Positions 1 through 29,862 of a stretch of DNA of 64,000 nt are shown piece after piece; position 1 is the stretch's first letter, and each line of letters starts with the position of its first letter. The DNA comes from Tubulanus polymorphus (taxonomy: Eukaryota > Animalia > Nemertea): assembly GCF_964204645.1 (NCBI RefSeq), contig NC_134036.1, positions 496,001 to 560,000 on the forward strand, written 5' to 3'. The notes under the pieces were generated by a model, which worked only from the letters and a program-made list of their open reading frames with translations, had not been told where the DNA came from and ran no database searches. A program made the translations under genes and the position numbers.

Positions 1-3000
1 TCTTCTCCGATCAGAACGTCGACGCCAGGGATCCGGTCCAATTGAATTTACTCTACGTTCAGGTAACTATTCACATAACGCTTTAAAATCTAGAATCTGA
101 CTTACTGTCATTTGGATATGACTTTGACTATAGTTGGACAAGTTTTGTCCTTAAGAGATCTGACTTGAGCTGAGTCTACTGTATCATCCAACTCAGATAT
201 CGCTCTCAAGTCAAAAGATCAGACTTGAGCTGAGTCTACTGTACCATCCAACTCAGATATCGCTCTCAAGTCAAAAGATCCGACTTGAGCGGAGTCTACT
301 GTACCATCCAACTCAGATATCGCTCTCAAGTCAAAAGATCCGACTTGAGCGGAGTCTACTGTACCATCCAACTCAGATATCGCTCTCAAGTCAAAAGATC
401 AGACTTGAGCGGAGTCTACTGTACCATCCAACTCAGATATCACTCTCAAGTCAAAAGATCTGACTTGAACAGAGTCTCCTGTACCATCCAACTCAGATAT
501 CACTCTCAAGTCAAAAGATCAGACTTGAGCGGAGTCTACTGTACCATCCAACTCAGATATCACTCTCAAGTCAAAAGATCTGACTTGAACAGAGTCTACT
601 GTACCATCCAACTCAGATATCACTCTCAAGTCAAAAGATCAGACTTGAGCGGAGTCTACTGTACCATCCAACTCAGATATCACTCTCAAGTCAAAAGATC
701 TGACTTGAACAGAGTCTACTGTACCATCCAACTCAGATATCACTGTCAAGTCAAAAGATCAGACTTGAGCTGAGTCTACTGTATCATCCAACTCGGATAT
801 CACTCTTAAGTCAAAAGATCTGACTTGAGCGGAGTCTACTTATCATCCAACTCAGATATCACTCTCAAGTCAAAAGATCAGACTTGAGCGGAGTCTACTG
901 CACCATCCAACTCAGATATCACTCTCAAGTCAAAAGATCAGACTTGAGCGGAGTCTACTGTATCATCCAACTCAGATATCACTTTCAAGTCAAAAGATCT
1001 GACTTGAGCAGAGTCTACTGTATCATCCAACTCAGATATCACTCTCAAGTCAAAAGATCAGACTTGAGCTGAGTCTACTGTATCATCCAACTCGGATATC
1101 ACTCTTAAGTCAAAAGATCTGACTTGAGCGGAGTCTACTTATCATCCAACTCAGATATCACTCTCAAGTCAAAAGATCAGACTTGAGCGGAGTCTACTGC
1201 ACCATCCAACTCAGATATCACTCTCAAGTCAAAAGATCTGACTTAAGCGGAGTCTACTGTACCATCCAACTCAGATATCACTCTCAAGTCAAAAGATCTG
1301 ACTTGAGCGGAGTCTACTGTACCATCCAACTCAGATATCACTCTCAAGTCAAAAGATCTGACTTGAGCGGAGTCTACTGTACCATCCAACTCAGATATCA
1401 CTCTCAAGTCAAAAGATCTGACTTGAGTGGAGTCTACTGTATCATCCAACTCAGATATCACTGTCAAGTCAAAAGATCCGACTTGAGCGGAGTTTACTGT
1501 AACATAATGGATCTGTTTTCTTGTTACAGTCTCGAGACGCCATATTGAATGGAACTCATCCAGTCACTCAAGACGAAGCCGTTAAATTCGCCGGTATTCA
1601 ATGTCAAGTTCAATTCGGGGACCACGTAGAACACAAGCACAAACCTGGATTCCTTGAGTAAGAAGCTTCATTAGAATTTACGAATGAATGTCCATACGTC
1701 GGGAAGATTTTAATTTTTGTGGTTTATTTATTTCCGCGCAGTTTGAAAGAATTTCTGCCGAAAGAATACGTGAAAATAAAAGGCGTCGAAAAAAAGATCT
1801 ACGCGGAACACAAACGATACTGTACGCTGACCGACAATGAGGCTAAAGCTAAATTCACGCAGTTTTGTCGCTCGTTGAAAACATACGGAATCACGTTCTT
1901 TCTCGTGAAGGTAAGAGATGTATCAATTTGAGATATCAATTTGAGATATCAATTTGAGTTATCAATGATTTGAGATATCAATGATTCATGTAATTGATGA
2001 TTTTTCCCTTTTCATTTGTAACAACAGGAAAAAATGAAAGGTAAAAATAAACTGGTTCCTCGATTGTTGGGTATCACTAAGGACAGCGTCGTTAGGGTCG
2101 ACGAGAAAACGAAAGAGATTTTAAAAGTTTGGCCGCTGACGACCGTGCGTCGCTGGGCCGCGTCGCCGAACAGTTTCACGCTGGATTTCGGAGATTACGC
2201 AGATTCCTATTACTCGGTACAAACTACGGAAGGCGAACCGATATCTCAACTTATAGCTGGATATATCGATATCATTCTCAAAAAGGTATTTCACCTTTCA
2301 TGTTTGAGATTTCAGAAAATATTTTTCATTTCGCGAAATAGAATTTGTGAAATAATTGTTTTTTCGTTTAGAAAAAAGCTAAGAATTATTTTGGAATTGA
2401 GGGAGATGAGGAGTCCACGATGTTGGAGGACAGCGTCTCGCCGGCAAAGTACGTACTCAATAAAAACCGCTTTAATTGACGTTGAATTTATAGTTACTGA
2501 TCATATCGTTTGATTTATTCGTTACTAGGGCGACGATTATTCAGCACCAGTCGTCTAAGATCGGGCAAGCGACGTCCGGATCGGTGGCGATACCGGCGGT
2601 GCTCCGCGCCGGGGAACCCGGGGGCGGCGGATACAGTACCGGTACGATGCAACAAGCGCAGTTCGTAACTACTAGTAACCAAGCACACAGCGTGCACGCT
2701 GCTCCCTCGGTGAGTGACAACTTAAACCTCATTCATCGTTGTCTTATTATTTATGGTGAAGTTTTTTTCGAAGAAAAAAAATTTTTTCTATTGTTACTGT
2801 TTATTTAAACTCATGTCGTCATGGTAATATATTTATACATATATATTGTTATTCTGTTGTTTCCGATTCAAAACAGATTTTACGAGTAAGTTTCCCCTGA
2901 AAATTTCACACTGCGATTGAAAATGTTTTCGTCATATACCGTGGTGTTGAGGGGTTCTCTCCCCTACCCCCAGCGCATCCGGTTTATATGACTCTCAATA

Positions 3001-6000
3001 GTTCGGTGGTGGTTCAGTCAATTTCTTGTTTCTGTTTCTGGTGTGATTTTCTCTGTTTCATGAATTTCACTTTTTTTGTCGAATTTTATGTTGAAACATT
3101 TTACAGAGAAAATCATGTTCGCAAAAAGTTCGCAAAATGTTAATTGCTAATTCTTTGTTCTCGTTTCTGCCTCGGATCCTGATTCCTGGATTCTCGGATT
3201 CTCAGTCGCTTTGTGGTCTATCAATCTTCATTTCCAGCTGAATTCCCGCGAAAATTATAATCAACGAAATCCCCTAAAAAAATTAATTCTAATAAATATT
3301 ACTTTCTAATTATGATAATTTCACCACCATTGTTTATAAATTCATTAATTCTTTCCGACCCTTTTCTGTTCTGCCCTGAAATATCGTAAAACTGGTAATT
3401 CCTGGAAAAAAAAGTGAAATAATGTACTATTTTTTTAATTGTGGAGGGTTAAGATGTTATTTTAGAACGCAATATTTGGTTTATGATGGGGGTAGCTTTA
3501 GTAGATTGCTTTGAATGTATTAAGGTCATTGTCACTCATTGTCAGTTTAGTCAGTTAGAAATTCAAATAGTTGAAAATTTGAAAATTCAGATTGATAAGT
3601 TTGTCGCTTGCAATTTTTTTCCAGGGTCAAAGTTCTCAGATTCACGGTCTCGGTAAAGCCCAGAGGGCGCTGTTAGGCACGATCGAGGATAGTATCGGAG
3701 CGATGGAAGGTGCGAGAAACGACCTTGACTCTAAAGCCGACCTTCCTCCTCTCGGTTCAGACGCTGTAAGTTATTTCACCCGATTTCTCCACGCGAGTCT
3801 CGGACTGATTATTCCGTGATAAACAATTCTCTTTGTTGTCGTTATTGTTGCTAGGCTTCTAAGAAATGGCGCGAGAACACGCTGGACGTATCCCGTCAGA
3901 AGGTCGACGCCCACCTGTCGTCTATGAATGCTGCGACTGCCCAGTTGGTGACCTTGACTGCCGGAGGTCCGGATGAGACTGACTTCACAGCAGTCGGATC
4001 AGCCGTCAAAACTATGTAAGTTTCAGCTCATTAGAATATCCAAAATTTATAATATATCAATAGTTTCATGTCACGATATAAAAATCTCAAATTCATGATA
4101 ACTTGTTTGTGATATAACTGATAAACGAAAGTGTTCTCACTGATTCTACAATCGATGATATTTCAAAGTTTATTTATCTAACAGTTTTGAGATTTCTTCA
4201 GGCTTTCGCTATTTTCAGATCAACTGACATAACAGATTACTGTTTCTTTTATACTGCATTTAGATAATTCTCAAAAACTGTTGGATAAATAAACACTGAA
4301 ATCTCATAATTGCGATATCATTCTGTGATATTTCGATATTTTGCTTTATTTAACGACGAGTTTATTATTTCTGGCAGCTCTTCGAACATGACCGAACTGT
4401 CGTCCGACGTAAGAATGCTCGCCGCGCTTCAAGAAGACGAGAAATCCGGAAATAGTTTACTGGACGCGACGCGAATCCTGTGCAGCGCGTTCTCCGACTT
4501 GTTGAAAGCGGCGCAACCCGACGGTAAAGAACCGCGACAGAATCTGTTAAACGCCGCCAGTAAAATCGGTGAGGCGAGTAACGATTTGATGAGGAACGTT
4601 CACGAGGATGAGGTCAACTATCAAGGAGAGGTCGATAAAGCGTATCAGGTATATCGGAGTCTTATTTGTTAATGTTCTGCGATATTTCACTCTTTTAGGT
4701 CATAAAATAAACCCAAAACTATGCGATTAAACTTTTTAAACCAGGGGCTACAGTTGCTGAAAAGTTGGTTAAAAGAGTTAACCAGTGGATAGTTGGCATA
4801 GTGACAATTAGAATGTCATTTTCACCATGGTATTAATCCACTGGTTATCTTTAACCAACCTTTGAGCAACTGGCTCCAGTTTTGTACAGATTTGAAGGAG
4901 AACCAAAAGCGTCTTCTGAATTTGAATGAGTGAAATATTAGCTATTTTGTAAAATTCCTCAAGTTGTTACATCAATTAAATGATTATGTGCTAGTTTTAC
5001 AATTCAGTTAAATTATGATCAGTTACTTATGACCGTCTTCTCAATGATTTCGATCATTCAGTAGAAATGCTTGTAATTTCAGGATACTTTGTTAGGTTTG
5101 GCTAAAGCTGTTGCAAACGCTACCGCCGCCCTGGTGTTGAAAGCGAAAGGCGTCGCCAGCAAATGCGAAGATCAAACTACGCAGAATAAAGTGATCAGTA
5201 ACGCCACCCAGTGCGCGTTAGCGACATCGCAACTTGTCGCGTGTACGAAAGTGGTCGCTCCGACCGTACACAGTCCCGGTTGTCAGGAGCAACTGGTAGA
5301 AGCGGCGAAGCACGTAGCTAAATCGGTAGAAGGAATCGTAAACATGGCTCAGGCCTCGTGTCAGGACGAGAAACTATTATCAGAACTAGGAGCAGCAGCG
5401 ACTGCTGTAACACGAGCGTTAAACGACCTACTTCAACATATCAAACAAGGGAATGGAAAAGTAAGATTTTTTAAACGCAATTCCACGGTTCTCAATTTGA
5501 CTTCAGGGGCCACTTGCAGAGTCGTGACTTAAGTCCAAAAGTGATCTTAAATCTTAAGACTGGTCTTAAGTTGTTAGATTGGCTATAGAACTAAGCTGGT
5601 CTTAGACCAGTCTTAAGTCTAAGCCATGACTATGCAACCGGCCCATAGGGCCAATTCAACAGTCACGGCTTAGATTCCAATTTAGTTCTATAGTCAATCT
5701 AACAAGACCATCCTTTAGATATTTCTGACCAAATATCGATATATCAATCCAAATATTGATATTTCCTTCAGTTGATATTTATTTTCGCTTCGTTTACTCT
5801 CAGGGATTCCAACAGGAAACGACGATCGACACTGTCGTCACGGCGACGGATAAATTGTTCAGTTCTATGGGCGATTCTCCGGAGATGGTTAAACAAGCTC
5901 GCGTTCTTGCACAGGCGACTTCTCAACTCGTGAACGCGATCAGAGTCCAAGCGGAAGATCACCCAGACGACGATATGCAAAAACGTCTGCTCGAAGCGGC

Positions 6001-9000
6001 AAAGATTTTAGCAGACGCGACGGCTCGCATGGTCGCCGCTGCCAAGGTCAGTGGAGGTCGAATAATTATTTAAACTGAGGAAGCACCCTGTTGGTTTAGA
6101 TGATTATCATTAAACTGTTGGTTTGAATTTGGCATTCATACCTATAACTTAATCATAAGGACAAAAATTGTTAATGTTATATTCTAGTATTTCAAATTTG
6201 ATGAATTCTTTACCGGTCAGTATTGTTGCGTTGTAGTCGTGTGCTAGTAACCCTAACGACAACGAACAGCAGACGGTTTTACGCGAGGCAGCTGAAGAAC
6301 TTCGATCAGCTACTAACACAGCTGCTGCGAACGCGCTGAAAAAACGACTGATGACCAATTTACAGTTCGCTGCGAAACAAGTGATCTCTTCGACGACTCA
6401 AATGTCGACTGCTGCGCAATCATCGGAAAGCGCGAACTCGAATCAAGCAGCCGGGCATCATCTTACGGCTCAATGTAGGGTATGTATCATATCGTCTCCT
6501 AACCACAGACGGATGGTAGCGCTATAGTTTGGACCAAATATTCCCATGTAGAAAAACCCACAAGAAGAGTAAACTCATCGATTCTAACAATCGGCCAATC
6601 ATAGAATGTATATATGAATTTTCTGTGATATTCTGTGACCATATCTCTCCAATATTCAATGTACTATTCCCCTGTTGTAGTGAATGCATTCTAATGAAAT
6701 ATGCATCTATTAATGTTTGAGGATAATTGAATTATTCTATGCTAATATTTCTAGAAACCAACTGATCCACAGTATTGTGATCAGTGTTGAAATAAGTTCA
6801 TTTTCAATGAGTCAATTCTTAACTCAAAACTTCGGAACTGAGTCTAGTTGAATAACCATCGTCAGAAATGACTCTCACCTTCCCTGCATCATCATAAACG
6901 TCTCTACTTAAGAGAATAGATTCTATTTCTGGTGTTTCCTTCGTTTAGCTCGTCACTGATCAACTGCCCGAACTGATACACGCCATTAAAGCCACTCTGA
7001 ACGATCCCGACAGTATGACATCACAATCACACCTGATCAACACGGCCGAAGAGGTTTTACAACCGGCCGGTAAAATGATCGCAGCGGCGAAGGCAGCAAT
7101 TCCAACAATAACAGACCAGGCATCGGCGATGAGTCTCGCAAACTCGTGTAATAATACAGCATCGGCTTTGGCTGAGCTGAGAACGGCAGTTAGCAAGGTA
7201 CAGTTTAATTTTACTCGGGGGCAGAATTTCAATTATTGTGATGAATATTTCACCAGTTTATCACACCCTAGTTTTAACTACGACATCTGCAATCAGTTGT
7301 ACAGTTTTAGGCTTAGACTTAAGACCCTCACTTCCATCAGTGCCTACAACACCAGGAATCAGTTGTATATAGTCTTAGGCTTAGACTTAAGACCCATCCT
7401 AGAGAACTTCAGACTAGTTTAAAGATTCAAGATCACTTTTGGATTTAAGTTAGGACTTTGTTACTGGGTTTTGGAAGCAGTTTTATGGTTGATAGTTAAA
7501 CTCATTGTAGAGTGCATTAGATTAATTCTCATTTCCAAGCTCAACTGTGCAATCAGGTTCAGATCTACCGTGTGCAATCAGGTTCAGATCTACCGTGTGC
7601 AATCAGGTTCAGATCTACTGCGTCTACTTGATCATTCCTTTTGACGCGGTTTAATTCTTCAGTTTTCTCTATTTTCAGGCTCAGGAAGCTTACGGCGCTT
7701 CGTTAGAATTGGACGCGGCTTCGAGTCAAATTCACGATTTAGAACGAGAGCTCGAGGAAATATTACAAAATATCAAGAAAAATCAACTTGTTGCGTTACC
7801 GGGCGAAACGGTAAGTTAAAAATTCAAATATTTGTTGCTCTTTTGTATTCTATGTATCGGTATTTGAATTTTCTATAATTCCCATCATCCTGAATGGCTT
7901 CGCAGAAAACCCGTTATCGCTGCTTTGCTGCTATATTTGTAAGACTCTATTTCAGGCGGAATCTTGTGCTTTGCAAGTGGGTGGAATTTCTAAAACAGTC
8001 GGGTCGTCAATGGCCCAGCTACTGACCGCCGCAACCCAGGGTAACGAGAATTACACGGGTATCGCAGCCCGCGACACGGCCCACGCTCTACGCACTCTGA
8101 CGTCTGCCGTACGCGGAGTCGCCGCTAATTCCAGCGATAAAAACCTCCAACACTCGATCGTCGTGGCAGCGCGCGAAGTGATGGGGAAATCCGTGCAACT
8201 TCTCAACGAATCGAAATCGGCCGTTAACAGTCCGAATAATCCGGAGAATAATCAGCGACTCGCGCAGGTAAACTATCAACACCAGGTGGCGCTGCATGTC
8301 TCAACTGTTGTCAATAGAATCTCTAAAACAACACCAGGGGGCGCTGCATCTCTCAACTGTTGTCAATAGAATCTCTAAAACAACACCAGGGGGCGCTGCA
8401 TCTCTCAACTGTTGTCAATAGAATCTCTAAAACAACACCAGGGGCGCTGCATCTCTCAACTGTCGTCAAGTGAATCTCTAAAAATGTTTTGTTTCTCATT
8501 ATGAACAATAGGTGGCGAAGACAGTATCGAATGCGTTGAATAACTGTGTGAATTGTTTACCGGGTCAACACGAGGTCGAGGTGGCCATTAAACAGGTGTC
8601 AACAGCGAGTCAGAAGATCACAATGGGAGAGGTATGTACTAGAGACCCGAGGCTGGTGGTGCCCATCCTTGTCTTAACCAATCCCTTAAATCATATACCC
8701 CAGCACTGGGTTTCATAGTTATGAAACCTAAATAATCCCTGGGAATATTTTGAAATTTGTCAGTTATAACCATGGTTTCTCATTGTTACTATGGTGGTTG
8801 TCACCCAGATTGAGGATTTACCCCTAGGGATAACTTTGATACTCAGTCTATGAAACCGGGCCCAGTTGTTTTATGGTGAAAATTTTTGTTCCTTCAAATA
8901 GGACCTGTATTCGTACACTCCAATCAGTTTTATAGGTGATATATTTTGTCACTTATTTCTCTGCTGCCTATTTTGATTTTTCTCTAATATTGCGTTGTTT

Positions 9001-18000: not shown

Positions 18001-21000
18001 TGAAGATACTAAAACTCTCGTAGCGGGAGCAGCGTCGAATCAAGAGGAACTAGCGACCGCCGCTCAGAGCGCCGTCCGTACGATCACCAGTTTATCGGAT
18101 GTGGTAAAGCGCGGCGCCGCGTCGCTCGGTTCGGATCAACCCGACGCTCAGGTCAGTATTTACTACGCGTGCTGTAAATACCGTCCGCTTCACATCACTT
18201 CTACTCTCCGTCGTATCTCGGCAACACACTTAAAGTGGTGAAGCTGTTTAATCTATCACAGTCTAATCGATCGCTTCGTTCCCCGGTCGCGCGCTATCGC
18301 CGTTAAATACTATCATAAAGATGTTGTCGTGGTAACCGTCGATATTTTGCATGCATTGTTGTATTTAGATGATTATTGATTACCATCGTATGTCTATGGA
18401 AATTGAGGGACAGGTAGGACGTCTACGTCTGAGCGCTATTAACAATCGTATCCCGTAACAACGGTTGCTATATAACGAATAGTAGTTGGAGCATGACGAC
18501 GGTTTTTCGTCTCGTTAGCGATTGAATGATAACAATAGTTCTGGATAGTTCTGAAATAGTTACGAGTAGTTTCTCTAATGTAGTTCGACTAATAGCCTGC
18601 CGTTCTAACTTTTGATTGGTTCTCAGAAGAACCAATCGAATCTATTCTCTCTGAATCTTGCTCTTGTTTATCGTAGTTTTGATTTAGTTGTTTGTATTTA
18701 TTTAAAGTTAATAGTTAGTGAAAGTTCTCGTCACCCACAAGTAAGCTTTATACCCAACCGAACACACTTTTACATGGTTCCCGCGGAACAGGGAAATTGG
18801 GAAAAACTTGGGAATTTTTTAAATAATGATTCCCAGTTTGGAAATATTTGAGAATTTGAAAGATTTCTTCAAATCAGGGAAATATTTGGGAAATTCATTT
18901 ATATTTTACGTTTCATTTGGTTGAGGAATCTTTCATCAGCAATTTCCCTCGAGAATCACCTTTATCGAACAGTCACCACTAAAATGTTGACTAGCACGAT
19001 GATACCTGTCCATTTCCATTTTGAAAAATTGAAAAATCACCCATGAAAAACTTGGGAATTTTTAATTCATGTAACCATGGGAACCATGCTTTTAGCACAC
19101 CTCGCACTACTGCACTTGTTTTTGTACGCTCCTTTAGTTCAAAAGATGTCCGAAAGGTGGCGGTCTTACCCAAGAGATCACCAGTAGTTAAATCACAATT
19201 CCATTCGCAAATTTAAGTTAAAATATGGGTAGGGTGCATGTTGGGTAAACGGTTTGATCGTTAAATTCGAATTGTAAATCGACCGCTATGGTATCATTAC
19301 TAAAACTACGCCTGGTGTTGTATTTAGGTACTACTGATAAACGCGGTGAAGGATGTGGCGTCTGCTCTCGGAGATTTGATACAAGCGACGAAGAACGCGT
19401 CAGGGAAACACGTACAGGATCCGGCGATGTCGAACCTGAAAGATTCTGCTAAGGTCAGTATTAGACGTCTCTACGAATACAACTCAAACTCCGCTCGTTT
19501 TTATTTCCATCTTTGCTTCCTTTTCATTCTTTCTATCGAGATTTCCCCCGAGTCTTTAGTGTCAGAATGATAATTAGACTGGTTTCTAGTAGGTATAATT
19601 GGACTGGTTCCGTAACCAGCTCCTGGGTTCTCCAATGGATTGGACTGGTGGTTCTGTAACAGACTGGTTCAGTTACAGATTGGACTGTGTCAGTTACAGA
19701 TTGGACTGGCTCAGTTACAGATTGGACTGGTTCAGTACAGATTGGACTGGGTCAGTTACAGATTGCACTGTGTCAGTTATAGATTGGACTGGCTCAGTTA
19801 CAGATTGGACTGGCTCAGTTACAGATTGGACTGGTTCAGTACAGATTGGACTGTGTCAGTTACAGATTGCACTGTGTCAGTTACAGATTGGACTGGCTCA
19901 GTTACAGATTGGACTGGCTCAGTTACAGATTGGACTGGTTCAGTACAGATTGGACTGTGTCAGTTACAGATTGCACTGTGTCAGTTACAGATTGGACTGG
20001 TTCAGTTACAGATTGGACTGTTTCAGTTACAGATTGGACTGGTTCTCTGTAACGGACTGGTTCCCTGTAACGGACTGGTTCTCTGTGACGGACTGGTTGC
20101 CTGTAACAGACGGGTGTTGCATGTTTATCGTTGTAGTGGGATCAGACGTTTTCTTCGCGTCAACTGTTGATCGACCGGGAGCAAGTGAGTGAAGGCTGTA
20201 TTCTGAACACAGCTTCTTAATCTGACACCGTGTCACCAGGGGGCGTCCCTCAGGGTTAACTCAGTGTTTGAGAGTAAGAGGTTTCAATGGCGGCCACAAG
20301 GGGGTGCCACCCTCGGTGTTTAGATATCTTGGAAGACATACGTCCTAAAAGACGCAAATTTTGATGCAATGAGTGTCAATTTAGTACGTTCTGTCGTCTG
20401 ACGCTACCTCACCAGAAAGGCCATGGGGGTCCGGATCCCTGAGAGTACTGAGTGACAAGTGGGTTCGAGTCCTGCTGGCTGCTTACAGTGTGCGGGTAAC
20501 ACTTCACAGGCCGCGGTCCCGTCGTGAGATTAAATGAATAATCCAGGAGGTTTCTAAGATCCAAGCAATATGAAGCCAAAAACAAACAAATCACCTGCTA
20601 AATCCACCCCTAAGGGTTCTTCGTGCGCAGGGTATATCTTTTATCAATTCAACATGTTTATAAATATTTCTTCTATTTAGAATTGACTGTATGATCTGAA
20701 TATTAAAAGGGGTGTAAGTAAAACAGGCAGCATGTGGGTAAAACTGAAAGCATTATTTATTACATCCCTTCAATCCCGCACCTTTCAGAGAGTTATTTCA
20801 TCTCCAAAGCGATGATTTAAACCGCGCTGCAACAATCCTCCCGGAATTCCGTTTCAGTTACTGATTGACATGTTTTTGGAATGTAAATGTTGCCTGTGTC
20901 TGTTCTAGGGGCTTACGACGGCGGGAGAGTGTCAGGCGGGGTACGGGGGGAGCGAGGTTTGTCAGGTGACACGGTTGAACAACGTAACTCATGCGAACCG

Positions 21001-24000
21001 GGATTGATCTAAAAAATTTAAAAAAATGAATTTTTAAAACGCGGCTTACAGCAGCTTTTTGAGACTTTAACAGACAATATTTAGATTTCGCTTTGAAACG
21101 TACGGATAATGAAACAATGCTTGCGTATCTTAACTTTGTCGTGTTCAGAATGCAACTAACACTCGTAGATTTTAGAATCAACTTATTTTCATTTAGTTAC
21201 GGTAGTTTAGAGTAATAATCATTTGCGCAATTCTAGCTACATTATTTAGTTTGTGAATCTCTTTTTGACCAATGAAGAAAATTCATTAGCGTAAAACTTT
21301 ATTATTACATCTTTGCGTGATAAATATTAGATTGTTTTTCATCGCCTAGGTGATGGTAACCAACGTAACATCATTATTGAAAACGGTAAAAACTGTCGAA
21401 GACGAAGCGGCCCGCGGAACCCGTGCATTAGAGTCGACTATCGAAGCCATCTCGCAGGAGATTAAGGTATATCGAGATTCGCTATCATTAATCTGATATT
21501 TAATATCGTGATATTGAGATATAAATGCTTGTTGTTTTTTAGAGTTTCCAGTCGTCCGATCAAACCGACCAAAAAGCTTCGGCAGAAGATTTGATACGAT
21601 ACACAAAACCGATCACTAGCGCCACCGCGCAGGCAGTCGCGGCGGCGAACTCATGTCGGCAGGCGGATATCATGGTCGCCGCTAACAACGGTCGTAAAGC
21701 TATCTGCGATTTGCTTAACGTATCAAAGGTAAGAAAATGGCAATCGCCTGAAATCACCAGTATGAATCTAGTGACCTCGATTTCTGACTAATAGTTATTG
21801 TTTTCCACCACCAGGCGGCAGCGCAAACCGCCGAATCTAAAGAAACACGACACAGAACAATACAAGCTGGACTTGAATGTGCGTTCATATACAAAGAGCT
21901 GATGGAACAGTTGAACTTGGTAAGAATATCTCCAATAGTTACTCGGAGACCAATCGTTTCAAACTGCTCACATTGTTGTCATCTCGTTTCAGACGGTATC
22001 CAAACCGAATCCCGACAACAGAGCGAAACTATCGATAATCTCGAAACGGGTCGCGACGTCGGTCCAGGAAATCATTCAAACATCGGAAGCATTGAAAGGT
22101 AATGTAGAACGGAGTATAATGAATGAGCGTGAAGGCCAGAAAGAGCGTGCCCGAAACAAACAAATTCACAATTTAAGACAAAGACTTTCGTTTCATTCGA
22201 TCATCGCTGATCATCGATGAAACAGCGCCCTCGTGTGGCCGGTGTTGATGATATAATTATTTTTACGATGTTTTTATTAAGCGTACTAGCAGGCGGGGCA
22301 CGGGCCCGGGTAAACACTACTGTTGTTTTATTCCACGGAACACACCGTGACACCGATACAGTCCGCAATGCACATCCCTACAAGTTTTAGTGAAATCCTT
22401 ATTTTAGTGTTATTCTACTATGGTACCGTGATTGCTTTTTGTGTTCTGCGTCCGATCCCTTCGTTTTTACATCCATCATGAATTTTACACATTCAAAATA
22501 ATGCAAACATCACACGGGGAGTTTTTTTGCCCCTAAACGCATGTTATGAACAGTTATGAAATGGGGTTCGCTGCATGTTGCAAGTTTACAATGAATCTTT
22601 TTGTATCGCGTTTGAGGTATTTCTGAACTGACCTGGTAGGTAACGCTTAGTTGTTAAACGACTTCTTGTAAACTGACAACGTTGAGTAAACATTGTAACT
22701 AGTATTCAGTAACTAGTATTCAGTTCCCTATTGTTGTGGCTAGTATTATGAAATGAAGTTAGATATTGCGTAATCAGTAAATGCTGTGTCTTTGTGCATG
22801 TATTCATTTCAATTTCAGCTTCATTGTTAACAACAATACAGCAGACTTCGCGCTAACCCGGTAACTTACAGTTCCGATGAATTTTTCCCGGTCAAAACAG
22901 CAATAATACATGGGCTGGGTTTCATAGACTGAGTATCGAAGTTATCCTTAGGGGTAAATCCTCAATGGGCCCGGTTTCATAGACTGAGTATCAAAGTTAT
23001 CCCTAGGGGTAAATCCTCAATGGGCCCGGTTTCGTAGACTGAGTATCAAAGTTATCCCTAGGGGTAAATCCTCAATCTGGGTGACAACCAACATAGCAAC
23101 AATGAGAAACCATGGATATAACTTGACGAATTTCAAAATATTCCCGGGGACTCTTTTTCTTCCACATCTATGAAACCCAGTCCTGGTCATTCAGAGCAAC
23201 GATTGGTAAACGTGATTATCCGAGGCCAAGCGCGCAGTCTACTGTATTATTTGCTCGTGTGGTGGATTTAACCGCTTGTGCGTTTATACGCGATAGTCTG
23301 TGTGATGTTCTCTCGTTTTATTATCATTAACTTTAGCCGCGCTGCACGAACGTTGGAATATTTGTATGTATACGAAATAAATGGGTAAAATAAAATGGTG
23401 GAACCTCGCGTGTCGAACCGATGAGCGTGCGGCCAAACATCTCCCGATCACCTTGAGAAATATTAGTTTAGTTGGTTACGGTGATACCAGTGGATGACTG
23501 ACATAGTGACACTTAGGGGTGATTGATTTATTACGTACACATTAGGGGAGGGGTCAGTGCAGTTGCGTACTGTAATGCTTCATGTATATGAAAAAATGGC
23601 CGATTTTGTGTGCAGGGACGGGGTGAAATATTCCAATTCTATGCGTACGTAATAAACGAATGATCCCTTAAAACTGTATTGTTATCACTGAATTTATCCA
23701 GCGGTTAATATCGACCAACTTTTCAGCAACTGACGCCTGAATTTCCTATTTTCATCGAGATTCCACCTTATATTTGTCAGTGTTAGTTATCTATCAGTGT
23801 TTATACATCTCTCTCGGCTTTTTGTCTGGGAAATAAATGTGATTCTACTTTTATCATGATCAGGGGGATACATATATAGATCGGTCAGGGGTTAGGGAAC
23901 GATGGTGCATGCTTCAGATTGTTATCCAATCAGAGATGATCTCTGCTGTAACACTACACCTAAATACTCGTCACACATTTACCAACAATCATCTTTCATA

Positions 24001-27000
24001 TCACAATCTAAATATTCTGTAAAGCACATACCACTCATTCAACAATACATGTCGTTAACATTTGAAAATTATTCGCTGCTATGAAATCCATACTATTCTA
24101 ATTGGTGATTGGCTTATGGATGTAGGCCTTCTACGTAAAGTGGTAGTTATTGGTGATTTATGGAAGAGAAAAAGGTTTTTTGGTTGCGGAATGTCTTAAA
24201 CTTATTTTCCATGAAAAAATTTCAAAAAGCGTTATTGAGGGAAATACTTATATGTTAGTTTTGGCAGTTTACAATCATTGCGATCGCATAATGTTATCGG
24301 ACGCTATTTTGATATGGTCTCAAAGGATGAGACTGCCTTAGTTCACCTTGTGTTTAACTGAACACCTCCGTGACAAGGGTACCACCCCTCAAGGCCGTGT
24401 CTCCTGAATCTGTGAGATAAAAACTTGTGAGCTCTATTTCGATCAAATTGATTGTGTTCAGTTGAAGCTAAGTATTTTCCATCAGATCGCGCTCAAACGT
24501 TCGAAAATTCCTTCAAACCTATACTCTATACAATACTGTATTCCTTCTCATGAATATTGATAAGCATTATGAATATTATAATGAGCTAATGAATATTAAT
24601 GATTTGTATTTTCTTCAGACAACGAGGCACCGGAGTCTAGTCTCCACGGCAAGCAGCAGGCGTCACCACTTGGTTACTCCGGTTTTCAGGCTAACCTCCT
24701 ACGATGTATGTGTTATTGTAGTCATGTAGTATTATTGTTGGGCATCACATTGTTGTGACTGTAGTGAAGCTTGTTGCTATGGTTACTGCATTGTTTCGGC
24801 GATTGTTGATAAACGTAGATTTAGGGCATGATTATATTTAACGTGGGACACTTTTCAAACGGAATGAGAATTGTGTTGTAGATTAGGAGAAAATATTTTA
24901 GATGAATTATTTGAAACCGATGATATTGGAATTATAGACAAGTTCGATGCTGGCTTCATGTGTTTGATATGCGCAGGCTTTCTGTATTTGATGAATATTG
25001 GCTTTTCGTAATAATGATGAATTCGTGTGTATTAAACAGCATGCGTTGATTGATTAAGCCGTGTCTGCGGAAAAAAAATGTTTCGAAATATTATTTAAGA
25101 GATTTACGAAGATGTAAATGAAAATTATGAAGTACAATTAAGAAGATAGTTATAAGATATTGAAAATGTTCCAGAATTCATAGATTTATGTAGGGTTGTA
25201 AAATACCAAGTTACAGTAGACTGCACTTGCCTCAGATTTCACAGGACCAGTAAATCGACTGATTGATTGAATTGTGAGGCTGTCGCGGTGACAATGTTAC
25301 ATGGTGAGGCACGCGATAATCCAAAGCAATCAACTCCTGTTTGGCAAGCGCAGTCTTAACTGTTAAATGCAGAATTTATTGTCCATGAAATATGTACTGA
25401 TGATAACGTTACTTTTTAGATTCCGAATGGATGTTCAACCGTTACGCGTCTCCGGGACAGAAAGCGCGGGCTCCACGCCCGTTTCGTGATCAACTCAATC
25501 ATCAACCTTTATCCTGCAAGTGCAACAATCACCATTTTATTTCTTTCGGTTGCTAAGCAATGGGCGAACAATGGATCTCGATGCAGTTGAGGGGGGTACA
25601 TGGCAAATGAGCATGGGAAGGGTTTCTTTGGGTTATCAACAATTATTTTGGAGCCAATTTCACAAAAATTTCTCTCATGCATTTGGTTACTTGTTTACTC
25701 GGATTTTAGATAACTTTAGAAAACGGTGTTAAGCAGGGATACATTGTTAGTCCATTGTGGATGAATAATTTGTTTTGGCCTTTGCTCTTTAGTTTTGCCT
25801 CTCATCGTCCCATGTTTCAATTTTGGTGGTTAATGATTTGACAGCATGTATTTTTAACTGCAATGATGGTTCCAGGGGTTCACCTTTCAGCAGCGCTAGC
25901 AGCAATCAAACAATTAATCCAAGATTGATTTTAATTCAGAATTATTTATTACGTTATCTTTGAAATCTGTTGAACGGACCCCTGTCTTTACATGTGACAC
26001 CTGAATTATACATCTGCAACAATCAATTCCTTTTCACGATAAATTTTGCGACGTTTAATTCAGGCTATGCTCAATAGAGGGCATAACCTAACTAATCATG
26101 GTTATGCATTGATTGATAGCACCCCCAATCCTTGGTGGTTATAGACGGTATATTTGTGGCACTATGTTCCACCACATGTTTGGTGTAACTGGTACACTAT
26201 GTTTTTTTGGTACCGACTACAGTTTATTGTAATATCTGCATGAAAAATTATTGAAAATGATTTCGAATTCTGACTAACAGCCACCATCTTTCTTTGTTCA
26301 TAAATATATACATATATTCATACGCATATTTATTTTTGTTGGTTTCTAAGCAACGGGTCGTCTTGGTCCGCTGTTTACGAAATCAACAATGAAATCAGTT
26401 ATTCATTTATTGATTGATTTTGATAGTTCTCTAGTTTGTAATCGTCGTAGTAATAATTAATTTTCGTAGATATTTCTTTAACTTGTGGTTTTAGTTTTCA
26501 GTGTAAAATGGATTATATATTCGCTAACGCCCTCTATATTCTATTCAAGACATTATCCGGTGTTGAGGCCACCATATATATTTATGTATATATATGTATA
26601 TATTCATCAAAAATCCTTCACCCTTTATACCTTATCTTTTGACCTTACCTTTTCTAACCCACACTTAACAGCTGTTCTCTACTCCTATACAATTGTTGTC
26701 TTCGCTTTCTAATTTCCCGCTAACACTCTAACCGATGGTGTCTGACGACGATTGCGTAGGTGTAGAGCAGGTCACAACGCCCCCTGTTGGGGTGGTCTGT
26801 AACTAACAATATAACTTTCTCTAACTTTGCAGCATCAGGAAATAAAGGATTCACATTTCGTTCACAAATTCTCCACACTTGCGCGCGCGTTTCTAGTTCT
26901 AGAATTGAATTCATCATTCATTTTCTTTCACCAACACATGGTTGAACACCATTTCGTGTCACGAAAAATATACTAAAGAAAAAAGATAATTGAAGGCAAC

Positions 27001-29524
27001 CTTCAGTTTCAAATACAACAATGGAAGCGGTTAAAAGCTGTTAGAAATGTCTATCTTTCTATGTCTGTCTCTGTCCTGTCCTTTAGGTCTATATCGTGGT
27101 GTATAGAAACTACTACTATTTTTACAGTTATAGAAATTTCATCTCTACTTGTTCTCCATCCCTAGATCTATTATTGTAGTCTGTAGGAACTACCTTCGTT
27201 TCGATAGAAATCTCTTAGTGGCCTCAGGTCGACCCTCAGGTCGACCCTTAGGTCTCGAACTGTTATTTAATCATCCAGTGTCTGTGCTAGTACTGTCTCA
27301 AATTCAGTTATTGTTCCTGCAGAATTGGACATCCATTTTGTCCATTTACCGATTGCCACATAATTCGTTCATGTATCCCGTATAGAAATCTACGGTTCTT
27401 CGTTTGTCCACCAGGTGGCATTTCTATCCGATGAATCCCGCCCGATAGATGGCGCTGTCTGAATCCTGATTCCAGCATGTTGCACGATATACTCATCACT
27501 CAATTATCCGTTGTTGTCATAGTGATACACCCATGTTGTAACTGTACGGTATATCAGACACACTTCCCGTTTAGCTTCTAGCGGCAGCGTATGTTTTGCA
27601 CATTTACACCACCAGGTGGCGTTTTGATTAAGTAATTTTTTTTCCGTGTACCTCGTATTTCATTGAGGTTTATGTCCAGTTTTATATCTCGTAACTTTTC
27701 CACATTTTCTGAAATAAAACATTTTCGATATATCGTACATTCTCTTTAGATATATCTCGTAACGGACGGTGAATTAATTTCGATATTTATTCTCGATATT
27801 TTTTTAGATAATGATTGGGCCGATCCGGAGGACCCGACGGTGATCGCCGAAAATGAACTGTTGGGAGCGGCGAATTCGATCGAGGCCGCGGCTAAAAAAC
27901 TATCGTTACTGAAACCACGCCCTAAAGCTAAGGTAAGCTACACCGGCGCCATCTACTGGGTAATTCTATCTAACACTGGATATCCTCCGTTAGCTGGATG
28001 GAAACTTATGATACACTGCGAGAGAAGGTGTCGGTTACTTTGAGATATGTTTGATATAATTGGTGGTTGATATTTGAGGTTCCACCATTTATCAAACATA
28101 CCGCATTGTATCCAGACTAGATTCAACAAACCGAGGAAGAAAGAAGAGTAAGAGAGAGAAGGGAAGAGGGAGAAGGAGAAGGAGATTAGAAAACTTTATT
28201 TTATATTTTATAGGAAGCTGATGAATCGCTTAATTTCGAAGATCAAATTTTAGAAGCCGCAAAGTCGATCGCGGCAGCGACTTCGGCTCTCGTTAAATCG
28301 GCGTCTATCGCACAGAAAGAACTGGTTGCCTCCGGTAAAGTGAAACCGACCTATCATAGAGAACATATGGACGACGACGGACAATGGTCTCAAGGTCTCA
28401 TATCTGCTGTAAGTGTTAGTGTTTGAAACTGCGATATATCATGTTCATGTCTTAGATATATCAACCTGTGATATATCGATATCGATCTACGAGAGATGAT
28501 GAAATATTGTTAGTTTCTCTGAGATATGTTTGATATAATTGGTGGTTGTTTTGATTTCTATCATATATCAAACATAGCGCAGAGCGGCTGACTGTCGTCA
28601 CAGCAACCAGTCACAATAAGCGGATGGACAAACGAACGGCCGATAACCTACAACCTGTGTAGACATTCAAATTAGAAAACCTCTCATATCACTGTTACTT
28701 TAAACAATCGGATCTGTTTGTATTTGCAGGCTCGTATTGTTGCCGCGGCGACGCATAGTTTATGCGAAGCGGCTAACGCGATGATTCAAGGTCACGCTAG
28801 CGAAGAAAAGATGATCTCGTCCGCTAAACAGGTCGCTAGTTCGACGGCTCAGTTATTGGTCGCTTGTAAAGTGAAGGCCGATTCGAATTCTGTTGCTATG
28901 AGACGATTACAGGTATGTAACAATGATTACAGTGGAATCTTCCTTACTCGGTATCGTTGAATTCAGGGTTTACCGGCCTCAAGTGTGTGAACTTAAATTA
29001 GATTTATTTTGAAAATTCTTTTATAGTAAATATCACCTAAGTTGGACATTGCCAATGTGGACTTATTTTCTGATTTCTTTTATTTCTGATCGATTACTCA
29101 ATTTTACTCTTCAGCAATAACTCAAAGATTAATGTTGCTAGTCCCAGTTTGCCTGAGGTTTACTGCTGTACCATTGCTACCAAATGAGGAAGAATTTTTA
29201 AGGCAGAAATTTACTAAGACAATGACTGAATAAAACTAATGATATTGTATTGTGTGTATTCAGGCTGCTGGTAATGCTGTAATGAGAGCGACTGACGCTC
29301 TGGTCAGAGCCGCGCAGGATGCTAAAGACCGATCAGATGATACAAACGTGTTGATGATAAACAAACGCATGGTCGGCGGTATGGCGCAGATTATTATGGC
29401 GCAAGAGGAGATTCTTCGCAAGGAGAAAGAACTGGAAATGGCGCGGAAAAAACTGAAAACAATTCGCACGGCGCAATATCGTCCGGAGGATGAGGAAAAC
29501 AATGCTGGAGGCAGCAATTTCTAG
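1..29524 (+). CDS. TLN: Talin, 5'-partial: FERM F2/F3, rod R1-R13, THATCH (I/LWEQ) and dimerisation helix
   Basis: Translations match talin hallmarks: DQNVDARDPVQLNLLYVQ, KGKNKLVPRLLGITK, WAASPNSFTLDFGDY, QLIAGYIDIILKK, VLSAATVVAKHTSALCN, DPEDPTVIAENELLGAA, GQWSQGLISAAR, QLLVACKVKAD. Exons, all GT-AG and frame-consistent: <1-62,1530-1657,1742-1910,2028-2285,2372-2448,2529-2709,3625-3765,3855-4015,4378-4648,5083-5460,5804-6046,6237-6479,6949-7197,7679-7810,7956-8267,8512-8631,9013-9231,9321-9439,9721-9904,10331-10597,12743-12904,13021-13161,13454-13635,13722-13854,14398-14679,14914-15060,15148-15249,16464-16583,16964-17110,17539-17705,17968-18151,19328-19453,21350-21466,21543-21728,21815-21919,21993-22098,27808-27932,28214-28408,28730-28912,29264-29524(TAG). 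Confidence 0.97.
150..1500. repeat. 60-bp tandem satellite (about 22 copies) in a talin intron
   Basis: Unit gtaccatccaactcagatatcactctcaagtcaaaagatctgacttgagcggagtctact; internal inverted repeat CTCAAGTCA/TGACTTGAG. Confidence 0.97.
2877..2885 (+). CDS. TLN: Candidate 9-nt talin microexon (ILR) in the head-rod linker
   Basis: ttccgattcaaaacag|ATTTTACGA|gtaagt; both flanking exons are phase 0; consensus donor. Confidence 0.6.
4745..4876. mobile_element. MITE family C (PIF/Harbinger-like, CAG TSD)
   Basis: Terminal inverted repeats ggctacagttgctgaaaagttggttaaa / tttaaccaacctttgagcaactggctc; CAG at 4742-4744 and 4877-4879; related copies near 23460-23737, 36095-36220, 49688-49818, 55861-56143, 59080-59190. 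Confidence 0.75.
5507..5644. mobile_element. MITE family A (about 138 bp)
   Basis: Near-identical to 41141-41278; imperfect TIR gggcc.(c/g)ttgca.agtcgtgactta / taagccatgactatgcaaccggccc. Confidence 0.8.
8276..8484. repeat. 52-bp tandem repeat x4 containing a CTCF-like motif
   Basis: Unit caacaccagggggcgctgcatctctcaactgttgtcaatagaatctctaaaa fills most of talin intron 8268-8511. Confidence 0.9.
8704..8862. mobile_element. MITE family B (PIF/Harbinger-like, CAG TSD)
   Basis: Same internal sequence as 13995-14153; CAG at 8701-8703 and 8863-8865. Confidence 0.8.
9918..10256. repeat. GA-rich polypurine low-complexity tract
   Basis: (GA)n/GGGAGA runs; similar tracts at ~42830-42920 and ~47418-47503. 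Confidence 0.9.
11318..11666. repeat. Complex minisatellite with a GAGCCCAGAACTG core
   Basis: Repeated cccagaact/cccagaaccatggcgctgca subunits. Confidence 0.85.
11921..11935 (+). CDS. TLN: Candidate 15-nt talin microexon (DFRAM)
   Basis: gttgtttatcaag|GATTTTCGCGCCATG|gtaacg; phase 0/0 between QQE and VLSAAT. Confidence 0.5.
13995..14153. mobile_element. MITE family B (PIF/Harbinger-like, CAG TSD)
   Basis: TIR ggctcggtttcatagac / gtctatgaaaccgggcc; CAG at 13992-13994 and 14154-14156. Confidence 0.85.
15626..15652 (+). CDS. TLN: Candidate 27-nt talin microexon (VGKAGFEFG)
   Basis: ccgtaatttag|GTCGGC...TTCGGG|gtaaga; phase 0/0; GC-rich island in an AT-rich intron; (CAT)n YCAY cluster just upstream. 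Confidence 0.6.
18369..18413 (+). CDS. TLN: Candidate 45-nt talin cassette exon (MIIDYHRMSMEIEGQ)
   Basis: tgcatgcattgttgtatttag|ATG...GGACAG|gtagga; phase 0/0, open frame. Confidence 0.55.
18773..19088. mobile_element. Putative MITE with CATGGTTCCC termini
   Basis: TIR catggttccc / gggaaccatg flanked by direct repeat CTTTTA on both sides; internal GGGAA repeats. Confidence 0.5.
19595..20110. repeat. 22-bp tandem minisatellite
   Basis: Unit cagttacagattggactgg(c/t)t, about 20 copies; source of the spurious ORFs at 19599-20192. Confidence 0.95.
20137..20184 (+). CDS. TLN: Candidate 48-nt talin cassette exon (WDQTFSSRQLLIDREQ)
   Basis: tgcatgtttatcgttgtag|TGG...GAGCAA|gtgagt; phase 0/0, open frame. 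Confidence 0.5.
22913..23182. mobile_element. MITE family B, reverse orientation, with the terminal ~55 bp present three times in tandem
   Basis: ggtttc(a/g)tagactgagtatc.aagttatcc.taggggtaaatcctcaat x3, then the remainder of the element. Confidence 0.8.
23516..23667. mobile_element. Tourist/Harbinger-like MITE (TTA TSD) nested in a family C copy
   Basis: TIR ggggtgattgatttattacgtacacat / atgcgtacgtaataaacgaatgatccc; TTA at 23513-23515 and 23668-23670. Confidence 0.7.
24619..24705 (+). CDS. TLN: Candidate 87-nt talin cassette exon (DNEAPESSLHGKQQASPLGYSGFQANLLR)
   Basis: ttgtattttcttcag|ACAAC...CTACGAT|gtatgt; phase 1/1 matches the flanking exon ends (22098/27808); open frame. Confidence 0.6.
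25420..25515 (+). CDS. TLN: Candidate 96-nt talin exon (xSEWMFNRYASPGQKARAPRPFRDQLNHQPLS), GC donor or alternative terminal exon
   Basis: gttactttttag|ATTCCGAATGG...; phase-1 open frame; ends either at |gcaagt (GC-AG) or reads on to TAA at 25554-25556. Confidence 0.45.
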
Positions 29525-29862
29525 AATCAACCAAACAACCTCTAGAATCAGCTCAGCAACTTCTTGAATCAACTGAGCCACTTCTAGAATCAGCTGAGCC
29601 ACTTCTAGAATCAGCTGAGTAACTTCTAGAATCAACTGAGCAACTCCTAGAATCAGCTCAGCAACTTCTTGAATCAACTGAGCCACTTGTAGCATCATCT
29701 GGGTAACTTCTAGAATCAACCAAACAACTTCTAGAATCAACTGAGCATATTCTAGAATCAGCTCAGCAACTTGTAGAATTTACAAAGAAACCTCTTGAAT
29801 TCACGATGAATCTTCCAGAATTGACGAAGCTACTTCTAGAATCAACTGAGCCACTTCTAGAG
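29510..29862. repeat. 21-bp tandem repeat starting at the talin stop codon (3'UTR)
   Basis: Unit ttctagaatcaactgagccac; the first copy contains the TAG stop. Confidence 0.9.

Follow-up and report, generated by a model that had tools for sequence, protein, structure and literature searches.

Intron 6 of the talin gene of the ribbon worm Tubulanus polymorphus very probably contains two cassette exons, A and B. The gene lies in the stretch of DNA analyzed here, which we call the window: 64,000 nucleotides of NCBI RefSeq assembly GCF_964204645.1 (268 Mb, 77 contigs), contig NC_134036.1, C12:496001-560000. Talin is the main force-bearing link between integrin and actin, and intron 6 interrupts its gene at the boundary between rod bundles R12 and R13. 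The evidence for the two exons consists of three splice joints in an RNA-like sequencing run (A to B, B to the next constitutive exon, and one that skips both), homology with the talin of another ribbon worm, Lineus longissimus, and reading phase. Taken together, our results make it very likely that A and B are cassettes of a minor class of transcripts, that a probable microexon lies in R10, that these exons are orthologous to exons of Lineus, and that the other in-frame segments of the long introns are there by chance. An earlier note on this DNA, made from the sequence alone, had proposed a hidden splicing program in which each of six long introns holds a phase-matched, frame-preserving exon. 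The proposal holds for intron 6 and, probably, for intron 3, and finds no support in the sequence of introns 1, 2, 4, and 5.

Probable cassette exons A and B in intron 6

This stretch is represented in four sequencing runs, all from the same organism and study. Run X1 is DNA-like and looks like the DNA source. Run X2 is RNA-like, is available as contigs, and carries no record of library type or tissue; its contigs were compared over 21990-27940, that is, over intron 6 and its flanks. Depth in X2 was 226 to 436 over the exons flanking intron 6 versus 0 to 27 inside the intron, and this contrast is the reason that we read the run as RNA-like.

Three joints were found among these contigs (Table 1). 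One removes intron 6 whole, and the other two, A to B and B to the next exon, sit in a single 700-nt contig. The joints fix both limits of exon B as well as the donor of exon A. We infer the acceptor of exon A (ttcttcag directly before 24619) from homology, from its acceptor score of 10.4, which is the highest in the intron, and from the reading frame, which opens only at 24603. The splice score of exon A, 16.9, ranked first among 825 candidates, and the exon A region is single copy in the genome. Both exons have lengths divisible by three, are open in the phase 1 of their flanks, and possess usable splice sites.

The same two exons were picked out by comparison with Lineus, for which sixteen isoforms within the series X1-X17 were retrieved (RefSeq XP_064644908-XP_064644927; locus OU343005.1, here L001). 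When the six long introns were compared in six frames with the whole Lineus talin locus, the top matches were 25416-25553 (41 bits), corresponding to exon B, and 24609-24713 (32 bits), corresponding to exon A. These matches are collinear and lie in the orthologous Lineus intron; no other match exceeded 27 bits, and the next unrelated ones reached at most 25 bits. The counterpart of exon A is the cassette L001:42989-43066, and isoforms X1-X17 of Lineus vary in precisely these exons. Exon B matched the Lineus talin isoforms by tblastn (E=0.014), and it was the sole match that stood out when the orthologous introns were compared by blastn. At its start, 30 of 32 letters are identical to Lineus in the nucleotide alignment. 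A putative branch-point-like element about 20 nt upstream of its acceptor is identical in Lineus (alignment A1), and a block directly after its donor is partly conserved. Both exons are conserved at the same Lineus position, and the surrounding intron is not.

In both worms, the cassettes occupy the intron before R13, in the same phase 1 and the same order, with a protein identity of about 46% for A and 48% for B. The Lineus intron, which is longer than 16 kb, differs in holding four cassettes (78, 45, 57, and ~94 nt). Two were found in the window, where A is joined straight to B; counterparts of the 45-nt and 57-nt cassettes were not found between or before A and B. Moreover, the donor of exon B is GC in the window and GT in Lineus. 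The Lineus exons are computational models, and we found no paper describing them.

According to a local reading of the frame, A and B together put 62 residues in the place of a single Asp, which lengthens the protein by 61. The insert directly precedes the start of R13, where DW.DPEDPTVIAENELL is conserved; alignment A3 shows an invariant G[ST]DWVDP.DPTVIAENELL. In an AlphaFold2 model of the C terminus of Lineus isoform X1, the whole insert had a pLDDT of 25 to 44, compared to about 90 for R12, with a low-confidence helix over the SEWMF stretch.

The 87-nt candidate of the earlier note is exon A and is now supported by an RNA-like joint and by Lineus homology. The note had also listed a 96-nt segment. 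An exon of this length does exist in intron 6, but its GC donor breaks the AG..GT rule by which the segments had been chosen, and it may or may not be the listed segment. The word "hidden" was too strong, as homologous exons are already present in the RefSeq models of Lineus and of molluscs.

Table 1. Window coordinates of the talin gene, its long introns, exons, splice joints, motifs, and in-frame segments
Feature	Position	Strand	Size and phase	In-frame segments, observed/dinucleotide-shuffle mean	Remarks
Talin gene	3-29524	+			Encodes talin from residue ~200 (FERM F2/F3) onward, stop codon included; 5' end upstream of the window
Intron 1	2710-3624	+	915 nt, phase 0	26/30	End of neck linker, just before R1; no supported alternative exon
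Intron 2	10598-12742	+	2145 nt, phase 0	78/78	R8; satellite 11281-11681; no supported alternative exon
Intron 3	15250-16463	+	1214 nt, phase 0	38/63	R10; Lineus and Acanthaster isoforms vary at this position
Intron 4	18152-19327	+	1176 nt, phase 0	39/50	R11; ~330-bp repeat; no supported alternative exon; Lineus orthologue 359 nt
Intron 5	19454-21349	+	1896 nt, phase 0	388 (inflated by tandem array)/141	R11; 21-bp array; neither an alternative exon nor an in-frame alternative donor is supported
Intron 6	22099-27807	+	5709 nt, phase 1	256/268	R12-R13 boundary; hosts exons A and B
Exon A	24619-24705	+	87 nt, 29 codons, phase 1-1		Preceded by cag, donor GTATGT; 87-nt segment of the earlier note
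Exon B	25420-25515	+	96 nt, 32 codons, phase 1-1		Preceded by tag, GC donor GCAAGT; SEWMF.RY motif
Skip joint	22098 to 27808				GT..AG; X2 contig depth 428.6
A-to-B joint	24705 to 25420				GT..AG; X2 contig depth 15.2
B-to-next-constitutive-exon joint	25515 to 27808				GC..AG; X2 contig depth 15.2
Putative branch-point-like element	25393-25402	+			TGTACTGATG
Intronic block after exon B donor	25516-25553	+			Partly conserved with Lineus (..AA.AA.C.CCATTTT..)
GCATG (Rbfox core pentamer)	24826-24830	+			121 nt downstream of exon A
GCATG	25611-25615	+			96 nt past exon B; the Lineus exon B is followed by GCATGCATGCAT at 58-62 nt
Candidate microexon	15626-15652	+	27 nt		R10; peptide VGKAGFEFG; acceptor tttag, donor GTAAGA; 27-nt segment of the earlier note
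9-nt segment	2877-2885		9 nt
15-nt segment	3002-3016 or 11921-11935		15 nt
45-nt segment	18369-18413		45 nt
48-nt segment	20137-20184		48 nt
48-nt segment	20909-20956		48 nt
96-nt segment	11840-11935		96 nt
39-nt segment	20146-20184		39 nt

A probable microexon in R10

The candidate microexon of intron 3 probably represents a real exon that adds nine residues inside R10. It was the best of 27 in-phase candidates of this intron when compared with the peptide of an annotated 33-nt Lineus microexon at the same position. Among 7,838 decoys from the rest of the window, 0.26% reached its similarity, 0.27% reached its splice score, and none reached both. It has in common with the Lineus microexon a GCCGG.T.TGAAT core and the CGGGGTA at the donor, and it lies in unique sequence. 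The 27-nt segment of the earlier note is thus supported by homology and splice score.

Neural microexons of the eMIC/Srrm4 type measure 27 nt or less and carry a UGC between polypyrimidine tract and acceptor. The candidate lacks this feature: the 25 nt preceding 15626 (..gatttgtgtccgtaatttag) contain no TGC, and neither does the sequence ahead of the Lineus microexon.

A start of the form V.(R/K)AG is common to the window peptide VGKAGFEFG, the Lineus R10 microexon VVRAGMNMPAG (L001:38737-38754), and an amphioxus R8 insert, VRAGK(T/S)STVT (P0001, P0160). This likeness across different rod bundles may be a coincidence or a shared structural need.

The talin gene and its long introns

Residues 200 to 2556 of Lineus talin-1-like isoform X17 (P0175) align with the window collinearly in 39 pieces, with a mean identity of 67% (tblastn). 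This protein is the closest annotated relative of the window talin; mollusc, brachiopod, and annelid talins reach 59 to 63%. The exon 5089-5460 was used as a query against protein collections and returned full-length talins, which served as queries for further searches. Membership of the talin family (FERM head, helical-bundle rod, I/LWEQ C terminus) is indicated by ordered similarity over FERM F2/F3, the rod bundles R1 to R13, and the dimerization helix. Since X17 spans all six long introns with no residue missing, the constitutive gene model is complete. No talin protein of T. polymorphus itself was found in any protein collection, using as queries a single exon, the full-length Lineus protein, and a 421-residue part; no hit was closer than 76%. 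Introns 1 to 5 therefore have no independent transcript support.

The coordinates that the earlier note gave for the six introns are correct. All have GT..AG ends, and they are the longest of the gene, the satellite-filled first intron excepted. Its assignment to protein domains, based on vertebrate talin-1, agrees with solved talin-1 structures. Searched one by one, single window exons matched chains 6r9t, 2x0c, 3dyj, 2jsw, and 1sj7, and the exons flanking the introns map to the neck end, R8, R10, R11 (twice), and the R12-R13 boundary, if we assume the rod bundle limits familiar from the literature. The exon after intron 6 maps to residues 2293 to 2333 of 6r9t.

The reading-frame rule and the remaining introns

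The earlier note had selected its candidates by a simple rule, which we counted as segments of 6 to 300 nt that are bounded by AG and GT, have a length divisible by three, and are free of stops in the phase of the flanks. Segments of all the lengths that it listed (9, 15, 27, 45, 48, 48, 87, 96, and 39 nt) can be found, and all six introns contain qualifying segments, although no more than expected by chance (Table 1). At least one such segment was present in 100% of the dinucleotide shuffles, and counts were similar in either wrong phase and on the antisense strand. Because every shuffled intron has qualifying segments, the statement that each intron contains at least one is uninformative. 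The rule alone has no discriminating power; splice-site score and comparison with the locus of a relative separated the real exons from noise.

Introns 1, 2, 4, and 5 were judged by sequence comparison, using the Lineus locus, position-matched inserts of other species, and splice scores. None of the four gave a homologous, conserved, or strongly spliced candidate. The alignment of orthologous introns from a relative, which the earlier note had recommended, recovered exons A and B and the shared core at the 27-nt exon, and nothing in these four introns. When the position-matched inserts were compared with all in-phase candidates having a GT or GC donor, nothing exceeded what the number of tests would produce. 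In intron 2, the YYA.W..R.. and VNVQAQ microexons of molluscs have no counterpart. The Lineus orthologue of intron 4 has no alternative exon, and the length of intron 4 in the window is partly due to a repeat.

Several individual candidates were rejected. The segment encoding FGGGS (3002-3016) resembles nothing but the glycine runs in gastropod linkers, and its splice sites are poor. The segment encoding DFRAM (11921-11935) has FRAM in common with a chiton microexon, a likeness to be expected by chance after about 15 targets. A resemblance between 18969-18998 in intron 4 and an insect C-terminal peptide (8 of 10 residues, E=48) is not collinear and is also a chance match. No usable in-frame donor follows exon 19328-19453 that could correspond to the 18-nt donor extension of Lineus. 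Apart from the 87-nt and 27-nt segments, and possibly the 96-nt one, the segments of the earlier note are chance open segments.

Splicing-factor motifs

The earlier note had pointed to repeated Rbfox, QKI/How, and Nova/Pasilla motifs in the long introns. All eight of its TGCATG positions are correct, and a ninth lies at 19235. In sense orientation, the six introns contain TGCATG 9 times versus 3.95 in local shuffles (20 of 1,000 shuffles reach 9), and GCATG occurs 19 times versus 10.2 (10 of 1,000 reach 19). On the antisense strand, both are at expectation. By a hand estimate, the long introns make up roughly 58% of the intron length of the gene; they contain all but one of its 10 intronic sense hexamers (p ~0.04). 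Over the whole window and both strands, TGCATG is below expectation (17 versus 25.9). Sense TGCATG is thus about twofold enriched, nominally so (p ~0.02 to 0.04, with three motifs tried). The other two motifs did not withstand counting: ACTAAC (QKI/How) occurs 5 times on the sense and 6 times on the antisense strand, with 30 versus 33 expected window-wide, and YCAY (Nova/Pasilla) 224 versus 225 times, so that neither shows an excess or a strand bias.

Every hexamer listed in the earlier note is more than 700 nt away from any validated exon. Exons A and B are each followed by a GCATG pentamer (Table 1); at the observed density, about 0.2 GCATG per exon would be expected by chance within 125 nt. 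In Lineus, TGCATG follows 3 of 7 cassettes, at +58/+62 for exon B, +62 for exon M, and +28 for the microexon. No (T)GCATG is found within 300 nt of 15626-15652. In mammals, downstream TGCATG enhances the inclusion of alternative microexons through RBFOX, and a 3-nt TLN1 microexon has been described (Li et al. 2015, PMC4317164). The window exons resemble those microexons in being short, in frame, and followed by (U)GCAUG, here only as pentamers at +96 and +121. Rbfox-type enhancement of A/B inclusion is a tentative proposal, possible but short of probable.

Comparison with talins of other animals

Lineus isoforms vary by inserts at X17 positions ~46, 842, 1801, 1884, 2132, and 2303, the last three of which correspond to window introns 3, 5, and 6. 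The event at 1884 is a 33-nt cassette, and that at 2132 is an 18-nt alternative donor rather than a cassette. The R10 microexon position (9 to 11 residues) is common to the two worms, and the same introns are long in both, bar intron 4: the Lineus orthologues of introns 1, 2, 3, and 5 measure 2.3, 2.5, 2.5, and 1.4 kb, compared to a typical 200 to 700 nt. Conversely, a 21-nt cassette, the 18-nt alternative donor, and a 9-nt alternative acceptor of Lineus are all absent in the window. The 21-nt cassette (EEFTLKE) belongs to an additional 1.7-kb Lineus intron (L001:20671-22652), where the window has one uninterrupted exon, 5804-6046; one of the two lineages has gained or lost an intron at this place.

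Annotated isoforms of a single species vary at the position of intron 2 in amphioxus and Pomacea, of intron 3 in Lineus and Acanthaster, of intron 5 in Lineus, and of intron 6 in Lineus and Pomacea. No such difference was found at the position of intron 4 among the talins compared. These coincidences make long introns a fair pointer to sites of talin diversification.

Many talin-1-like models of molluscs (Pomacea, Patella, Mytilus, Crassostrea, Mizuhopecten, Liolophura, and others) have an insert of 12 to 34 residues directly before the G[ST]DWVDP.DP of R13. It ends in ..E[IY][RE]WS[YH], forming an acidic-aromatic, W-containing patch. The insert is mostly encoded by a 36-nt microexon and is alternative within Pomacea; its resemblance to the window insert is one of position and of composition.

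Human TLN1 was regarded as having only one isoform before the description of exon 17b in 2023. TGF-beta/SMAD3 and PCBP1 control this 51-nt exon, which is included after Gln665, between R1 and R2 (Gallego-Paez et al. 2023, PMC9997659). Like A and B, it is an in-frame talin cassette between rod modules that annotation had overlooked. Exon 17b alters mechanical and binding behavior, a function that was tested; for A and B, a change of this kind would be the likely effect. Exons A and B lie about 1,600 residues beyond the position of exon 17b, and no orthologue of that exon was found in the window intron 4649-5082, where the best in-phase candidate had a splice score of 0.3. Several fish talin-1 models carry an insert of 17 to 22 residues (F/S-LGKGSF...) at the exon 17b intron; nothing comparable is present in 4649-5082.

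Drosophila also diversifies a single talin by alternative RNA processing. Its talin gene, rhea, yields long and short isoforms with alternative C termini and distinct tissue localization (Sarov et al. 2016, PMC4805545), in contrast to the linker cassettes described here. A tested rhea splicing event did not respond to loss of Rbfox1 or Bru1 (Nikonova et al. 2022, PMC8742874).

In the literature searched, we found no paper that describes cassettes of invertebrate talins in R10 or at the R12-R13 linker, nor any on the cross-phylum coincidence of talin isoform positions. Exons of this kind are already present in RefSeq models of Lineus and molluscs; the coincidence of their positions is the more novel lead.

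Interpretation and alternative explanations

Our preferred interpretation is as follows. In the main talin mRNA, intron 6 would be skipped whole, and a minor transcript class would include A and B consecutively while keeping phase 1. The 61 extra residues would enter the short linker between R12 and the actin-binding and dimerization module that begins with R13. The insert is probably disordered, as the structure prediction suggests, with a conserved aromatic patch, SEWMF.RY. Most likely, it would act as a tissue-specific linker extension or as a short docking motif, and it would change the presentation or the partners of the C-terminal actin-binding site. In R10, the 27-nt microexon would probably add nine residues. 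A, B, and the 27-nt exon would be orthologous to exons modeled in Lineus, and GCAUG about 100 nt downstream of A and B could plausibly enhance their inclusion via Rbfox.

A number of observations weigh against this interpretation. The joints come from a single RNA-like run, in the form of contigs, whose depths give no inclusion levels. A joint from 22098 to 24619 was not seen among the X2 contigs over the compared interval, and the contig that links A to B and to the next exon continues unspliced from 24142 into exon A. Exon B has both of its joints in X2, yet only together with exon A. The support for the 27-nt exon comes from homology and splice score. MAFFT does not place the mollusc E.RWSY under SEWMF, so that homology beyond Lineus is one of position only. 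As to regulation, the pentamers near A and B are AGCAUG and GGCAUG rather than UGCAUG, the motif enrichment is nominal, and in Drosophila, knockdown of Rbfox1 left the rhea splicing event unchanged (PMC8742874).

The full program of the earlier note, with a regulated cassette or microexon in all six long introns and with combinations of these exons tuning the neck, R8, R10, R11, and the R12-R13 linker, would agree with the isoform variation of other animals at the positions of introns 2, 3, 5, and 6, perhaps also 1, with the long Lineus orthologues of introns 1, 2, 3, 5, and 6, and with the twofold enrichment of sense (T)GCATG. We nevertheless consider it distinctly unlikely. Introns 1, 2, 4, and 5 yielded no homologous, conserved, or strongly spliced candidate. 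The mollusc microexons of intron 2 and the Lineus alternative donor of intron 5 have no equivalents in the window, intron 4 is short in Lineus, and repeats explain part of the extra intron length.

Slightly less likely still is an internal promoter in intron 6, from which A and B would enter a transcript for a short C-terminal protein consisting of R13 and the dimerization domain. The sole A-to-B contig is unspliced over 477 nt upstream of A (24142-24618), as such a transcript would be, no joint from 22098 to 24619 was reported, and Drosophila has short talin isoforms with distinct localization (PMC4805545). However, unspliced X2 coverage of similar depth (4 to 19) extends all along intron 6, and we therefore read the unspliced stretch as pre-mRNA merged by the assembler. 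Furthermore, the frame is closed by a stop just upstream of A, before 24603, yet A shares phase 1 with the exon before it. In the Lineus models, the homologous exons belong to full-length isoforms, and the acceptor of exon A is very good by the score given above.

That splicing noise or chimeric assembly produced the joints and that the in-frame segments are nothing but chance deserves next to no credence. Every shuffled intron contains qualifying segments, and the inclusion contig is far shallower than the skip contig (15.2 versus 428.6). Against this, the joints coincide to the letter with GT..AG and GC..AG sites, annotated exons of a worm with only 67% talin identity match A and B in sequence, order, phase, and position although the introns around them cannot be aligned, and the X2 contig departs from the assembly by 17 letters and two small insertions in 24266-24502 and by none in A or B, a clustered difference that was not used as a test. 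The contig stems from another individual, and 24266-24502 looks like a divergent haplotype block.

Cassettes A and B place a conserved insert at the hinge before the C-terminal module, and R10 probably has a microexon, in an animal with one talin gene. The isoforms with A and B are concrete cases in which effects of linker length or of a docking motif on actin binding, autoinhibition, and partner choice could be studied. A broader proposal is that the long-intron positions are ancient splicing hot spots across Bilateria, with examples from amphioxus and a gastropod for R8, from ribbon worm and starfish for R10, from ribbon worm, arthropods, and crinoid for R11, and from molluscs and ribbon worms for the R12-R13 linker. 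The cassette of this linker, with its aromatic patch, would be a lophotrochozoan-wide, Rbfox-enhanced switch in excitable tissues. We regard this as speculative and on balance unlikely. If true, the R12-R13 switch would change the regulation or the partners of the C-terminal actin-binding and dimerization module, and it would supply by splicing the diversity for which vertebrates came to use two talin genes.

Repeats and minor observations

The earlier note had described the six long introns as unique sequence, which is wrong for five of them, introns 2 to 6. The repeat of intron 2 is a 58/116-bp satellite with long arrays elsewhere in the genome, for example, on contigs C6 (~22.91 Mb), C8 (~16.08 Mb), and C10 (~1.28 Mb). 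Intron 3 holds an element of ~200 bp (16070-16284) resembling a miniature inverted-repeat transposable element (MITE); its genomic copies match both strands, as a palindromic MITE would. The interspersed repeat of intron 4 (18769-19108) gave more than 500 first-look candidates in the genome, and 40 scored copies on many contigs are 81 to 85% identical; it is like a short interspersed nuclear element (SINE) or a MITE. The tandem array of intron 5 spans 19662-20115. Intron 6 includes two high-copy repeats (~22786-23183 and 23383-23780), with depths of up to ~24,000 versus ~23 elsewhere in run X1, and many run contigs terminate at 22966-22970.

A 60-bp satellite (156-1505; 22.5 copies, 94% alike) fills the intron between exon 3-62 and the exon starting at ~1512. 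A 21-bp tandem repeat (29513-29861; 16.6 copies, 75% alike) runs from the last talin codons into the 3' untranslated region. Finally, many talin fragments in sequence catalogs of marine eukaryotes have an insert of 10 to 12 residues, A[ED]..NVT[VI]S[TS]IY, at the junction formed by the short intron 17706-17967 (262 nt; Lineus X17 residues ~2026 to 2030), which is possibly another hot spot of alternative exons.

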